64,000 nucleotides of DNA, taken from positions 496,001-560,000 of the IMG/VR virus record IMGVR_UViG_3300046660_000488; one strand, written 5' to 3'. How positions within the stretch are numbered: the first letter of the stretch is position 1; every line of letters begins with the position of its first letter. The notes under the pieces were generated by a model. It made no database searches. It saw nothing but the letters and a program-made list of their open reading frames with translations, and had not been told where the DNA came from. This document shows, piece after piece, positions 15,137 to 20,844 of the stretch. A program made the translations under genes and the position numbers.

Positions 15137-15151
15137 ATTCCATGTGTTTAG

Positions 15152-15223
15152 CAGGGACGGAGGGATTCGAACCCCCGACCCCTTGATTCGTAGTCAAGTG
15201 CTCTTCCGCTGAGCTACGCCCCT
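15152..15223 (-). tRNA. tRNA-Arg(ACG), CCA not encoded
   Basis: CTTGA CT ACG AA TCAAG; followed by CTA; flanks complementary. Confidence 0.92.
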
Positions 15224-15253
15224 GCAAAACACATGTTTGGAACCGGGTGTGCT

Positions 15254-15330
15254 TGGCATGGATAACAGGACTCGAACCTGTAACCTTCAGCTTCGCAAGC
15301 TGGTGCTCTCTCCAATTGAGCTATACCCAT
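15254..15330 (-). tRNA. tRNA-Arg(GCG)
   Basis: CCAGC TT GCG AA GCTGA; CCA; flanks complementary. Confidence 0.88.
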
Positions 15331-15443
15331 GCAAAGCACACCCGTTTCCTACTGCCCGGCGGTGGCGCCGCCGGGCAAGGATAAATCTCCCCTCGACGGG
15401 GAGACGGACGATAACGATGTCAAAGACCAAAAGAGTTAGAGTT

Positions 15444-15486
15444 GAAAAAGAAAAACCCCGGAAGGCGTGAGCCTGTCCGGGGTTTT
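15444..15486 (-). terminator. attenuator terminator of the Arg/Leu/Lys/Trp tRNA operon
   Basis: Minus AAAACCCCGGA-CAGGCTCACGCCT-TCCGGGGTTTTT-CTTTTTC. Confidence 0.85.
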
Positions 15487-15524
15487 GCGAGATCGCTACC
15501 AATGAGCGGGTCTGGTTGTGGAGT

Positions 15525-15629
15525 TTATCCCCCAACCAAACCGTCACGGCGAGCGCGCAGCCCCGAAACGTCCGACCACTTAAGCAGTCGGAGCGTTTTC
15601 AATCGGAGGGTGGCGAGGCGCCGGGTCAT
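15525..15629 (-). CDS. leader peptide, 34 aa, MTRRLATLRLKTLRLLKWSDVSGLRARRDGLVGG
   Basis: AAGGA SD; between promoter and terminator; 13 of codons 2-18 are R/L/K/W; distal codons form the antiterminator. Confidence 0.8.
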   Translation of the reverse strand: MTRRLATLRLKTLRLLKWSDVSGLRARRDGLVGG

Positions 15630-15687
15630 TGGAATTCTCTAATCCTTGGATGGGGCACGCCACAGCGGCGCGCTCCGTTCTTAAACC

Positions 15688-15718
15688 TATTTATGCAGGA
15701 ACCCGTTCCCAGCGTCAA
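15688..15718 (-). promoter_or_regulatory. promoter of minus tRNA operon
   Basis: TTGACG-N17-CATAAATA. Confidence 0.75.
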
Positions 15719-15805
15719 CAATAAAAGTCGGTGACCAAAATCATTCTTATTTCGTCAATGATTTCAGACACTTGTTGTGGTTGTGGCGCCAGAATGTCGC
15801 GGAGT

Positions 15806-16081
15806 TTATTGAACGTCGTCGATTTCTTTGGTGACCAACCAGCCCTCGTGGGTCGGCTCGCACAGTTGCCACTCAGCTTTGAAGAGGCCAACCGCCCCGG
15901 CGCCACCCAAGGGCCGCACTTCGACCCAGTGTCGCAGCAGGCCTTTTTCCTTCAGCGCTTTCTCAGTCCGCGTGCCGCCCCACCCGGCCGCCGGGAACCC
16001 ATGGCGCTTGGCCGGGTCCAAGCAGATGTCGGCGATCTCGATCAGGCGTCGGGCTTGGGCTGCGGTGAGCTTGGTGGTCAC
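15806..16081 (-). CDS. hypothetical protein
   Basis: Coupled to upstream ORF; GGAAG SD. Confidence 0.55.
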   Translation of the reverse strand: MTTKLTAAQARRLIEIADICLDPAKRHGFPAAGWGGTRTEKALKEKGLLRHWVEVRPLGGAGAVGLFKAEWQLCEPTHEGWLVTKEIDDVQ

Positions 16082-16923
16082 GATGCGAAATCTTCCTTGG
16101 TGTAGGGTTGGATCAGCGGTTCGAGTTCAGCACGGGCCGCCGCGAGCTTGACCTGCCCTTCCTCGCTCTTCACCCAGCTTTCAGTGTCGAAGAACGTGGT
16201 CATCGCATAGAGGTGCGGCGGCGTCGGGGCTTCATCCGTGCCAGCGACCTTGGCTTCGGCCGCTTCGCGTTTCTCGGCCATGCGCGCGGCGAAGTACTCG
16301 TCGGCGACTTTCTTCCATGCCGCTTTCTTCAGCCGTTCCTCGACGCTGGGCATGACGGCCAAAAGCTCTTCCGCGCCCGGCCAGAACGTGGCGGTGAAAT
16401 TGAACTCAGCCGTGAAACCAAGGTGGACCGGCGCGATATAGCGCCTTTCCAAGATGGCGGACCAGACGCGCTGGCGTTCTTCCCACTCTTCGCGTGGGAC
16501 ATTTTCATCCGGGTCGGTGCTGTCCCAGAAACCGTACGCCTCGATCCACGGTTGCTCGGCGACCATTTCCCGCAGGAAAGGCTGCTCGGCGAACACGAGA
16601 CCGTAGACCTTGCCCTCGAACGGCAGGATGCTGATCGACAGGTCGAAATCGTACTGCGACCGCATGCCGTCCTCGGAACGCTTCTTCCCCTTCTGGAAGC
16701 GGTCGAACGCCGTCCAGTATAGAGAGTCGATCTTGTCGCCCTCTTTCGGTGGGTTGATATAGCGCCGGTTGTCGTGATCGGCAGACATTTCGTCAGCCAT
16801 CTTCTTGGTCATCGCGGCCTTGACCGCAGCCTCGACCTCTTCCCGAAACTCCATGATCAGGTTGTGGATGTCGATCAGGTGCGACGTCGTGAAACGAATG
16901 CCGTGGCCGAGATTCATTGACAT
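16078..16923 (-). CDS. hypothetical protein
   Basis: AAGGA SD before ATG 16923; codon bias. Confidence 0.7.
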   Translation of the reverse strand: MSMNLGHGIRFTTSHLIDIHNLIMEFREEVEAAVKAAMTKKMADEMSADHDNRRYINPPKEGDKIDSLYWTAFDRFQKGKKRSEDGMRSQYDFDLSISILPFEGKVYGLVFAEQPFLREMVAEQPWIEAYGFWDSTDPDENVPREEWEERQRVWSAILERRYIAPVHLGFTAEFNFTATFWPGAEELLAVMPSVEERLKKAAWKKVADEYFAARMAEKREAAEAKVAGTDEAPTPPHLYAMTTFFDTESWVKSEEGQVKLAAARAELEPLIQPYTKEDFAS

Positions 16924-17036
16924 GGAGAGGGCGATCCTTGGAGAGCAAATAGGATACTGAGGCCGCCCCAATCTGGTCAACCAATTTCGGTCGGACCCCC
17001 GAATAAATACTGGGACAATCCCAGTTCGGTGGTTCC

Positions 17037-17975
17037 ATGCCTGATATTATCAAAGCCCGTCTAACGGACGGCCAGTCCCCGGTTTATTTCGTCAACGGCA
17101 CGGTCGTGGCGAACACGCCTGCCAAGGTGGACAATATCCCGACCGTCGTGGGTCCGCCCGGCCCGCAGGGCGTCAGCGTGCGATCCGCAGCCCTCGACGG
17201 CAACACGCTGTCGTTCACGCTGACCGACAACTCCATCATCACGGCCGGGACGGTCCCGAGCGGCCCGCAGGGTCCGCAAGGTGACACGGGTCCGGTTGGC
17301 CCGCAAGGCGCTCAGGGCGCGCAGGGCATCCAAGGCCTGAAGGGCGACCGTGGCGACATCGGTCCGACTGGTCCGACCGGCGCTCAAGGTCCGCAGGGTC
17401 CGCAGGGTCCGCAAGGCGCTCAAGGTCCGGCTGGTCCCACGGGCGCGAAGGGTGACACTGGAAACACCGGCCCGGCTGGTCCGACCGGCGCGCAAGGCGT
17501 CCAAGGTCCGTCTGGTGCTCAAGGCCTCCCCGGAAACGTCGGAGCCCAAGGCCCGGCTGGTCCTACCGGTGCGTCTGGTCCGAAGGGCGACACCGGCCTG
17601 ACTGGTCCACAGGGTTCGACTGGTCCTGCCGGACCTCCGGGGCCGACCTATGAGAACGTTGTGGCCCAAGTTGTGTCGGGATCGGTCAACTGCGACATCA
17701 GCGGCAACAATCTCTACAACTATCTGTTGGCTGGAAACGTCGTCCTGAATTTCACCGGCGTCGCTAACAACACCCGCACGTACAACACTGTTCTCGCGAT
17801 CAAGCAGGGCACGGCGGGTAACTATACCGTCACGTGGCCCGCCAACTGCCTGACCCCGAACAACCAGAACATCACCATGACCCCGACCGCGAACGCCGTC
17901 GATGTCTACACCATCTTCACCTACGACGGCGGCATTAACTTCCTGCTGACGCCGGTGGCCACGGACTACCGTTAA
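17037..17975 (+). CDS. collagen-like (Gly-X-Y) fibre protein
   Basis: Long uninterrupted GXY run; tail-fibre-like C-terminal domain; TAAATA 17004. Confidence 0.85.
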
Positions 17976-17976
17976 T

Positions 17977-19749: not shown

Positions 19750-19824
19750 GGGCCTGTAGTTCAACGGGAGAACGTCTGCATTACAAGCAGAATGTCGGGG
19801 GTTCAACTCCCTCCGGGCCTACCA
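19750..19824 (+). tRNA. tRNA-Val(TAC)
   Basis: TCTGC AT TAC AA GCAGA; CCA. Confidence 0.9.
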
Positions 19825-20029
19825 AAATACTGCTTGACAACGGTTCAACCGAACTTTAGGCAAGCAACCGCGCTCTTCGGGAAGCTCTCTTTGCTTACCG
19901 GACGGATTCCAAAACCTACCATAGGTGCGGAGTCGTGTAAAGGGGCCGGGGTCTTTGACATCGTTGATTTGCGTAACGAATTGGTCGGGCTTTACCAGAG
20001 CCCGGCCGACTTCGGGGACGTGTGTTTGA

Positions 20030-20101
20030 TGAGGGATAGTTCAGCGGTAGAACGCCTGTCTCTGGAACAGGATGTCGTAGGTTCGATCCCTACTCCCTCA
20101 T
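20030..20101 (+). tRNA. tRNA-Gln(CTG), CCA not encoded
   Basis: CCTGT CT CTG GA ACAGG; 16-bp complementary flanks. Confidence 0.9.
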
Positions 20102-20122
20102 CAAACACACGTCCCCATAGGT

Positions 20123-20198
20123 TCGGGGGTAGTTCAGTTGGTAGAACGGCAGTTTTTGGTACTGCATGTCGAAGGTTCGAGTCCTTCTCCCCGATCCA
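20123..20198 (+). tRNA. tRNA-Gln(TTG)
   Basis: GCAGT TT TTG GT ACTGC; CCA. Confidence 0.93.
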
Positions 20199-20220
20199 AA
20201 CACTCAGTATTCATCCTTGT

Positions 20221-20306
20221 TGGGGAATGGTGTAATGGTAACATCCCGGCCTTTGACTCCGGAGACCGAGAAGGATTTGTAGGTTCGAGCCCTACTTCCC
20301 CAGCCA
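20221..20306 (+). tRNA. tRNA-Gln(TTG), long variable arm
   Basis: 86 nt; loop CT TTG AC; variable AGACCGAGAAGGATTT. Confidence 0.85.
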
Positions 20307-20335
20307 GCATGAATATTGAAGACAATGTACTTTGA

Positions 20336-20412
20336 CGCGGAGTGGAGCAGTCAGGTAGCTCGTTTGGCTCATAACCAAAAGGTCGCGGGATCGAAGCCCG
20401 CCTCCGCATCCA
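20336..20412 (+). tRNA. initiator-like tRNA-Met(CAT), variant
   Basis: C1xA72 mismatch; anticodon stem TTTGG/CCAAA; T loop ATCGAAG. Confidence 0.85.
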
Positions 20413-20422
20413 AGTACATTGA

Positions 20423-20620
20423 GGCCGCGTAACAAGAGAGTGAAGCAGTGATGCCCCGTCATCTGTACCTGACGGGGAGGCCAGAAACAGACCGTGCATA
20501 CGCCCCACGGTCTCTAAATATGGAACACGGACCCACTGGGGCCGTGCGGGAGCCAGCACGACCCGCCGTGGTCTAAGTCCGTAAGGGGCAGAAAGCGGCA
20601 CACCCGGTACTGGCGGGTAA
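20423..20620 (+). ncRNA. candidate structured ncRNA
   Basis: Nested helices GCCGC/GCGGC, CCCCGTCA/TGACGGGG, AGACCGTG/CACGGTCT, CGTGC/GCACG; no credible ORF. Confidence 0.45.
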
Positions 20621-20651
20621 CCTATTTGGTCGAATGACCATCACCTTTTTT

Positions 20652-20729
20652 TGCGGGGTGGAGCAGTCCGGTAGCTCGTCAGGCTCATAACCTGAAGGTC
20701 GTGGGTTCAAATCCCACCCCTCGCACCCA
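20652..20729 (+). tRNA. initiator-type tRNA-Met(CAT)
   Basis: GGAGCAG..GGTAGCTCG TCAGG CTCATAA CCTGA (alphaproteobacterial fMet pattern). Confidence 0.88.
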
Positions 20730-20747
20730 ATTGTCCATGTGCTTCGT

Positions 20748-20824
20748 CTAGGCGTAGCGCAGTCTGGTAGCGCGCCTGCTTTGGGAGCAGGATGTCGCAG
20801 GTTCGAATCCTGCCGCCTAGACCA
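20748..20824 (+). tRNA. tRNA-Pro(TGG)
   Basis: CCTGC TT TGG GA GCAGG; C1:G72, A73. Confidence 0.95.
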
Positions 20825-20844
20825 AGCACATGGACTTTCACCTA

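Follow-up and report, generated by a model that had tools for sequence, protein, structure and literature searches.

The maturation of bacterial and phage tRNAs, as it is generally taught, consists of separation of the individual units by RNase E or RNase P, followed by exonuclease trimming. Pairing between the leader and the trailer of a precursor is usually regarded as a minor nuisance, amounting to one or two pairs. In the tRNA cluster of phage T4, the host RNase III makes one cut, and tRNAs without CCA are matured by way of RNase BN and CCA addition. Bacterial pre-rRNAs possess leader-trailer helices that carry the RNase III site and aid folding (PMC10250234, PMC11404451). Leader-trailer pairing of more than 6 bp occurs in eukaryotic nuclear pre-tRNAs and in MALAT1-mascRNA, where RNase P requires a bulge or mismatch close to its cleavage site, at -1/+1 (Lee et al. 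1997 and Gogakos et al. 2017, as cited in PMC8457004). In E. coli, as few as two pairs between the leader and the RCCA sequence lower kcat/Km of RNase P and need to be unwound (PMC9433436), and sequestration of the leader blocks RNase P in vivo (PMC7897497). Here we describe phage tRNAs that are "caged" by long leader-trailer helices, or stalks, which prolong the acceptor stem. They lie in two divergent tRNA arrays within a 64,000-nt stretch of DNA (the window), positions 496001-560000 of the virus record IMGVR_UViG_3300046660_000488. The stalks are a real, selected and clade-specific feature of RNA.

The record (G000 below) is a single contig of 578,292 bp with a GC content of 0.59. IMG/VR classes it as viral, with direct terminal repeats and a completeness of 100%; its best-matching DNA run is a rhizosphere metagenome. 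ARAGORN finds 69 tRNA genes in it, 40 of them inside the window, where they form one array on the minus strand (from 15330 down to 11963) and one on the plus strand (from 19552 up to 24336). For each tRNA, positions 1 and 72 were located and the leader, read backwards from -1, was compared with the trailer, read forwards from 73. The flanks of 15 of the 69 tRNAs prolong the acceptor stem by 12-21 positions without any offset. Helix scores are clearly bimodal, as these 15 tRNAs reach at least 9 and the other 54 at most 2. Shuffled trailers yielded a mean of 0.02 caged tRNAs per genome against the 15 observed, and when leaders were combined with the trailer of another tRNA, none of 4,692 pairs reached a score of 9. 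Nine caged units lie in the window, with helices of 12-19 positions (12-22 over the three genomes compared below); the six outside it belong to Thr CGT, Ser CGA, Ser GCT, two Tyr and Asp. An initial annotation of the window had named eight tRNAs with flanks pairing for about 8-17 bp beyond the acceptor stem. All eight were recovered, in register from -1:73, with helices slightly longer than it had estimated, and Leu(TAG) was added as a ninth. The units of the window are as follows:

14436-14550, minus strand: caged pre-tRNA-Leu(TAG); leader 14535-14550, tRNA positions 1-72 at 14452-14534, trailer 14436-14451; helix of 16 positions, ACCA encoded, C75 mismatched.
15141-15235, minus strand: caged pre-tRNA-Arg(ACG); leader 15224-15235, tRNA 15153-15223, trailer 15141-15152; helix of 12 positions, 3' end GCTA, T75 opposite T-3.
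15239-15349, minus strand: caged pre-tRNA-Arg(GCG), the first tRNA of the minus array; leader 15331-15349, tRNA 15258-15330, trailer 15239-15257; helix of 19 positions, GCCA encoded, C75 mismatched.
19534-19640, plus strand: first caged pre-tRNA-Ile(GAT), the first tRNA of the plus array; leader 19534-19551, tRNA 19552-19622, trailer 19623-19640; helix of 18 positions, ACCA encoded, C75 mismatched.
19644-19744, plus strand: second caged pre-tRNA-Ile(GAT); leader 19644-19657, tRNA 19658-19730, trailer 19731-19744; helix of 14 positions, every one paired, 3' end ACAA.
20014-20116, plus strand: caged pre-tRNA-Gln(CTG); leader 20014-20029, tRNA 20030-20100, trailer 20101-20116; helix of 16 perfect pairs, 3' end TCAA.
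20204-20319, plus strand: caged pre-tRNA-Gln(TTG) with long variable arm; leader 20204-20220, tRNA 20221-20302, trailer 20303-20319; helix of 17 positions, GCCA encoded.
20323-20421, plus strand: caged initiator-like pre-tRNA-Met(CAT) with C1-A72 mismatch; leader 20323-20335, tRNA 20336-20408, trailer 20409-20421; helix of 13 positions, TCCA encoded.
20733-20835, plus strand: caged pre-tRNA-Pro(TGG); leader 20733-20747, tRNA 20748-20820, trailer 20821-20835; helix of 15 positions, ACCA encoded, C75 mismatched.

Neighbouring caged modules stand 1-5 nt apart, the Arg(GCG) unit being 3 nt away from the next one. All nine tRNAs are called by ARAGORN and score 49.7-74.7 bits against Rfam RF00005 (gathering threshold 29). 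When single precursors are folded, the cloverleaf is kept and the stalk appears beside it, adding 14.5-36.5 kcal/mol of predicted stability. All nine stalks are also present when the two array transcripts, of 1.0 kb and 1.4 kb, are folded in full to minimum free energy. The feature is confined to tRNAs: when the whole genome was scanned for inverted repeats that enclose 40-200 nt, only short arms at chance level turned up beyond the tRNAs. Caged and uncaged tRNAs do not differ significantly in acceptor-stem strength, stability or self-folding (p = 0.15-0.45); a nucleotide other than G at +1 is mildly enriched in the caged ones (p = 0.03, uncorrected).

The helices follow strict rules around the CCA end. 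The pairs -1:73 and U-4:A76 occur in all 15 helices of G000 and G-2:C74 in 13 of them, and in the window the combination of the three, already pointed out by the initial annotation, holds for nine units of nine. Over 29 helices from three genomes, -1:73 is paired in 27 and the irregularity sits at -3:75. In 14 of the 15 caged leaders of G000 position -3 is a pyrimidine, mismatched opposite C75. The stronger statement that position 75 is never part of a G:C pair is true of the window and fails in the larger set, where three of the 29 helices contain G-3:C75 and leave position 74 unpaired. N73-C74-C75 fully paired together with an encoded CCA was found in 0 of 29 helices, and full pairing is seen only with CAA. 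Loss of CCA is confined to caged tRNAs (4 of 15, three with CAA and one with CTA, vs 0 of 53 uncaged; Fisher p = 0.0017). The altered ends had been presented as the alternative to a mismatch at 75, but they are not always better paired, as Ser GCT (C-3/A75) and Arg ACG (T-3/T75) are mismatched there. Leaders of the two classes differ as well. Uncaged leaders of G000 have U-1 in 32 of 53, A-2 in 31 and C-4 in 21 cases; caged leaders have G-2 (13 of 15) and U-4 (15 of 15), and are thus without A-2 and C-4, the positive determinants measured for E. coli RNase P (PMC9433436). The proximal stalk of many class I tRNAs comes near the consensus AUGUGUUUUG-N / N-CCAAACACAU, whereas the outer stalk parts, as well as the Ser, Tyr, Leu and Thr stalks, have unrelated sequences.

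Useful relatives were obtained with the Thg1-like protein of the window as search anchor. Two of them carry caged tRNAs and obey the same rule at the CCA end: G007 (IMGVR_UViG_3300050120_000230, 415 kb), with 9 of 52 tRNAs caged, and G008 (IMGVR_UViG_3300046616_000314, 561 kb), with 5 of 34. The arrays of G007 are syntenic with those of the window, with the same tRNA order and 71-78% blastn identity across array segments, and the PheS-like ligase encoded beside the array is 65% identical and syntenic too. Caged positions are shared and syntenic: Arg GCG and Arg ACG come first on one strand, and Ile, Gln CTG, Met and Pro come early on the other. The initial annotation had asked about flank complementarity across relatives, lack of conservation counting against its proposal; in both G007 and G008 the complementarity is conserved and covaries. 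Between G000 and G007, 9 of 13 helix positions of Gln CTG are altered on both sides and none is broken, and changes on both sides affect 11 of 19 positions in Tyr, 4-5 of 12 in Ile and 5 of 19 in Arg GCG. A gap-free alignment of 16 class I precursors (A2), with 13 stalk pairs, or 20 counted pairs when the acceptor stem is included, has 93.8% of stalk cells paired and double changes in 9 of the 13 stalk pairs, the acceptor stem being paired in 99.1%. For all 20 pairs the value is 95.6%, compared with 59% in column shuffles and at most 46% with slid partners. Outside positions 74/75, the 29 helices of the three genomes contain 22 G:U against 2 A:C mismatches on the tRNA-sense strand, an excess which indicates selection on the transcript and is not expected of a DNA inverted repeat. 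Among the differences listed for low-depth soil strain relatives, seen in contigs of four runs, are indels at 19642, 20319 and 20835, all of which fall into short linkers or the outer edge of a stalk.

Beyond these genomes, 14 other large phages (G001, CcrColossus, G010, G011 and others) have 0-1 of 336 tRNAs caged. The caged tRNAs have no close orthologs in G001. Nor are they a family of recent duplicates: at 64-86%, the identity to their best paralogs falls in the same range as that of uncaged ones. In G001, a more distant relative (L033-L040), the tRNAs abut with gaps of 0-2 nt and CCA is encoded in 23 of 57; this tight packing is the opposite strategy to caged modules. Other searches were less productive: megablast against isolate phages matched single tRNAs only, and a DnaB search for relatives gave one 6.8-kb contig only. 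Searches with the PheS-like ligase returned distant matches only, including G001 (53% identity), without tRNAs near the gene, and a 7.8-kb metagenome contig in which the upstream DNA lies outside the contig. An SF2 helicase was rejected as a marker of kinship for being too widely conserved.

The caged tRNAs are promoter-proximal in both operons, as the initial annotation had stated, and G007 and G008 share this placement. Arg GCG, which opens the minus array, is caged in three genomes of three, and Ile, which opens the plus array, in G000 and G007. An 18-nt conserved element, GGTCTTTGACATYGTTGA, lies upstream of the first caged tRNAs in the three genomes. Its copies in the window are:

15411-15428, minus strand: first copy, GGTCTTTGACATCGTT; the first caged leader of the minus array lies about 60 nt downstream.
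19950-19967, plus strand: second copy, GGTCTTTGACATCGTTGA; the leader strand of Gln(CTG) lies 47 nt downstream.

The exact 14-nt core of the element has only two occurrences in the 578-kb genome. At Arg GCG the order is terminator of the upstream gene, element, GC-rich hairpin and stalk. The copy upstream of Gln CTG has the same place in G007, and in G008 it precedes Gln(TTG); copies in relatives are located in L218 near 8588 and in L226 near 12630 and 6943. GGTCTTTGACATYGTTGA contains the -35 consensus TTGACA and also fits 9 of 11 positions of boxA, GYTCTTTAANA (PMC5725501), a gamma-proteobacterial consensus. Judged by these motifs, the element could be either the -35 region of a promoter or a boxA-like antitermination signal. 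Should the latter be true, the layout would copy the logic of rRNA operons, in which boxA is followed by the leader strand, the stable RNA and the trailer strand (PMC10250234).

Enzymes encoded by the phages bear on the way such precursors might be opened. No RNase III domain was found in G000, G007 or G008, and neither a dsRNA-binding domain (dsrm) nor RNase P RNA in G000, so any double-strand cut would be made by the host. G000 does encode a class II nucleotidyltransferase of the CCA-adding family (genome 65755-66123) and a Thg1-family protein of 273 amino acids (window 537-1358, minus strand; Pfam PF04446, E = 1e-26). Thg1-like proteins rebuild 5'-truncated tRNAs using the 3' strand as template (PMC4820378). 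The initial annotation had suggested both CCA addition and Thg1-like 5' repair as parts of a dedicated processing step. CCA addition agrees with the presence of the enzyme family and with CCA loss being limited to caged tRNAs, although G001, where caging is absent, has CCA-less tRNAs as well. The Thg1-family gene is indeed present, but its connection to caging did not stand up: many huge phages have homologs with 46-68% identity, as do the Caulobacter phages CcrColossus and CcrPW, and G001, CcrColossus, CcrPW, G010, G011 and others have the gene without caged tRNAs. It is explained more simply as a lineage trait serving general tRNA repair or tRNA-His maturation.

We propose that the 12-22 nt upstream and downstream of a caged tRNA would pair into a helix stacked on the acceptor stem, thereby giving a closed precursor module. 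The helix would bury both the RNase P site and the 3' end, and the stalk would first be cut as double-stranded RNA. Because two pairs already slow RNase P, stalks of 12-22 bp should stop it along with single-strand 3' exonucleases; the hindrance of RNase P anticipated by the initial annotation is consistent with published work (PMC9433436, PMC7897497) and with caged leaders that have G-2 and are devoid of A-2/C-4. With no RNase III gene in the phages, the cut would most likely be made by the enzyme of the host. We give about an even chance to the view that the stalk is opened by a host RNase III-type cut and that RNase P and 3' trimming or CCA rebuilding follow. The inner side of the weak point at C75 would comprise about 14 bp (T stem, acceptor stem, -1:73 and -2:74), and the outer stalk would reach 9-19 bp beyond C75; with both sides taken together, this geometry would suit an RNase III dimer. 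After the cut, RNase P would remove a short leader held by two pairs, a situation it routinely tolerates. The 3' end would be trimmed to the encoded CCA, while CAA/CTA ends would be removed and CCA synthesised by the CCA-adding enzyme. Likely benefits would be a clean release independent of RNase E and, by analogy with rRNA leader-trailer helices, correct folding of the first tRNAs in long untranslated arrays.

Several observations weigh against this scheme. None of the runs on record contains this phage as RNA, and the cut site, the order of steps and the enzyme are what we infer. Caged tRNAs are no weaker than others in acceptor stem or stability, and the idea that they need a folding clamp is not supported by this. 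Orthologs have gained and lost the stalk: Gln TTG is caged in G000 and not in G007, and Ile is uncaged in G008, so caging is not essential for a given tRNA; a Met ortholog is caged in G007 and one Met copy of G000 is uncaged. Across all leaders of G000, G-3 is scarce (5 of 68), so that the mismatch at C75 may simply follow from a general leader preference and not be a designed weak point; such a general constraint on -3 would suggest that RNase P still makes the final 5' cut. Finally, some of the proximal stalk has a conserved sequence (consensus AUGUGUUUUG / CAAAACACAU), which could mean a sequence-specific factor and not a generic RNase III. A more far-reaching version, which we regard as tentative and rather unlikely, is a clade-specific maturation route in which RNase P would be unable to act first and a double-strand cut, independent of RNase E, would gate the release of promoter-proximal tRNAs. 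The cutter would then be host RNase III or an unrecognised phage factor reading the AUGUGUUUUG/CAAAACACAU proximal stalk.

Instead of being cut, the stalk could act solely as a folding clamp or insulator, which holds the tRNA ends together while the long, repetitive array is transcribed and is then opened by RNase P, helicases or breathing. For rRNA there is a precedent, since subunits depend on its leader-trailer helices for their formation also when RNase III is absent (PMC10250234). RNase P does unwind short leader:RCCA pairing (PMC9433436), the C75 mismatch leaves just two pairs beside the cleavage site, and a boxA-like element stands upstream of the first caged tRNA. The 14.5-36.5 kcal/mol contributed by each stalk, however, greatly exceeds the two pairs for which opening by RNase P is known, caged tRNAs fold no less well than others by themselves, and the duplex would still confront 3' exonucleases; we consider a clamp without a double-strand cut rather unlikely. 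The burial of both ends in a duplex would also suit a protected store, a timed release or a decoy, that is, nuclease-resistant precursors which release tRNAs late or occupy host tRNA-targeting nucleases or tRNA-binding enzymes. Uncaged copies with the same anticodon do exist for Thr CGT, Asp GTC, Gln TTG and Met. Such a role is nevertheless improbable: Arg ACG, Arg GCG, Gln CTG, Pro TGG, Leu TAG, Ser CGA, Ser GCT, both Ile and both Tyr are the sole copies of the phage and hence must mature.

We also doubt that the stalks exist for the sake of end repair, with imprecise cuts being mended on the opposite strand by the Thg1-like 3'-5' polymerase and the CCA-adding enzyme of the phage. Both genes are there, one in the window and the other elsewhere in the genome, template-dependent repair of 5'-truncated tRNAs by Thg1-like proteins is documented (PMC4820378), and CAA/CTA ends are confined to caged tRNAs. 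Yet phages without caged tRNAs (G001, CcrColossus, CcrPW, G010, G011 and others) have the Thg1-like gene equally, G001 manages 34 of 57 tRNAs without encoded CCA and without caging, and general tRNA repair or counter-defence accounts for both enzymes well enough, which leaves this explanation quite unlikely. Very improbable, and disfavoured by us, is that the flanks belong to the DNA level only, whether as sites of recombination, as mobile tRNA cassettes or as artefacts of replication, and play no part in the RNA. By their nature the flanks are inverted repeats, and some of them share a common motif. But G:U outnumbers A:C by 22 to 2 on the tRNA strand, the helices always start exactly at -1/73 in register with the acceptor stem, their sequence varies among paralogs and orthologs while pairing is kept, and the caged tRNAs (64-86% best paralog identity) are not a recently copied family.

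The tRNA complement of this genome has other unusual members. Long variable arms, giving lengths of 85-88 nt, are present in Lys TTT, Lys CTT, Gln TTG, Asn GTT, Thr TGT and Cys GCA tRNAs (window 12664-12748, 12998-13082, 20221-20306 and 20932-21019; genome 42360-42445 and 104252-104338). Most of them adjoin a normal-length copy with the same anticodon, long Lys, Gln and Ile TAT forms are found in G007 too, and the long Asn tRNA receives no Rfam score. Two Leu tRNAs show the reverse, being short (78 nt). Outside the window, at genome 109999-110155 (minus strand), are two adjoining tRNAs with CTA anticodon, readers of the amber stop; G007 has one such tRNA as well. tRNA-His comes in two kinds (genome 104611-104686 and 106169-106243, outside the window; L220:608-683 and L220:1908-1981): a canonical one with encoded G-1 opposite C73, and one without G-1 and with a G1-U72 pair, whose position 73 is U in G000 and A in G007. 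The latter resembles that of some alphaproteobacteria, a possible clue to the host.

Between Pro TGG and the long Asn tRNA there are 60 nt (window 20861-20920) with a T-arm-like hairpin, 85% identical to L226:13461-13520 of G008 and called as tRNA by neither ARAGORN nor Rfam. The caged and the uncaged Met are separated by a GC-rich spacer of about 230 nt (window 20422-20650), which has no long open reading frame and no Rfam match and is covered by soil strain relatives with several substitutions. Most genes neighbouring the arrays had no match in Pfam and PHROGs. Two divergent genes between the arrays, 17037-17975 (plus strand) and 16078-16980 (minus strand), code for a collagen-repeat protein and a 300-amino-acid protein without known function; the pair has the same place in G007 and G008, with weak conservation (22-41% identity). 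Searches with the 386-amino-acid protein encoded at 17977-19137, also between the arrays, returned only itself. Beside the plus-strand array, at 24228-25463 (plus strand), lies the PheRS-like gene, which corresponds to NCBIfam NF051887, "PheS-related mystery ligase SrmL" (438 bits, cut-off 300).

A clade of huge soil phages thus keeps long covarying stalks on as many as one in five of its tRNAs, and the CCA end within them obeys a fixed rule. These stalks predict precursors refractory to RNase P and a double-strand-specific step in the release of tRNAs. Being natural substrates of about 100 nt, they offer an approach to how one substrate is divided among RNase P, RNase III, the 3' exonucleases and the CCA-adding enzyme. 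They also raise the questions of why CCA is never fully paired and of precursor structure as a means by which a phage schedules or protects its tRNA supply; if release were gated by the double-strand cut, the phage would control when or whether the stalked tRNAs become available. The design could further be used for insulated tRNA modules in synthetic arrays.

In the open-access literature, which is limited evidence, no account of stalks like these on tRNAs of bacteria or phages was found, and the phage modules are best placed by comparison with several partly similar systems. Candidates for a known RNA class were set aside: the best matches to the Y RNA-like YrlA family (RF02553) reached 30.2 and 27.9 bits against a threshold of 69, and each of them spanned two neighbouring tRNAs. 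The archaeal bulge-helix-bulge likewise relies on pairing of flanks to form the endonuclease site that frees the RNA, but the phage helices have only 1x1 mismatches and no two 3-nt bulges 4 bp apart, and a splicing endonuclease is not expected in bacteria. The T4 cluster, unlike the arrays described here, is not known to have a per-tRNA leader-trailer stalk coaxial with the acceptor stem. Closer in detail are the E. coli G(-2)U(-1) precursors, in which G-2:C74 and N-1:N73 extend the acceptor stem and slow RNase P in the same manner (PMC9433436); they end at about two pairs, whereas the phage helix resumes past C75 for 9-19 bp more.

The extension of 12-22 positions exceeds 6 bp as in the eukaryotic extended acceptor stem, but in the phages -1:73 and -2:74 are paired and the irregularity is shifted to -3:75, the helices are longer, CCA is encoded within the helix, and the carrier is a phage of bacteria. 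As in bacterial pre-rRNA, complementary flanks enclose the mature stable RNA downstream of a promoter-proximal leader, and pairing is kept by covariation; the leader of pre-rRNA carries a boxA-type element, and that of the phages an element that may be a boxA or part of a promoter; flank complementarity beyond chance and compensatory change in relatives, which mark a stalk of the pre-rRNA type, were both found. The differences are that the phage stalk encloses a single tRNA of 71-88 nt, measures only 12-22 bp, is set directly on the acceptor stem and is repeated as many modules in tandem, and that its cleavage by RNase III is inferred. The pre-rRNA leader-trailer helix is the closest functional analogue of the phage stalks, and the eukaryotic extended acceptor stem, including that of mascRNA, is the closest structural one.

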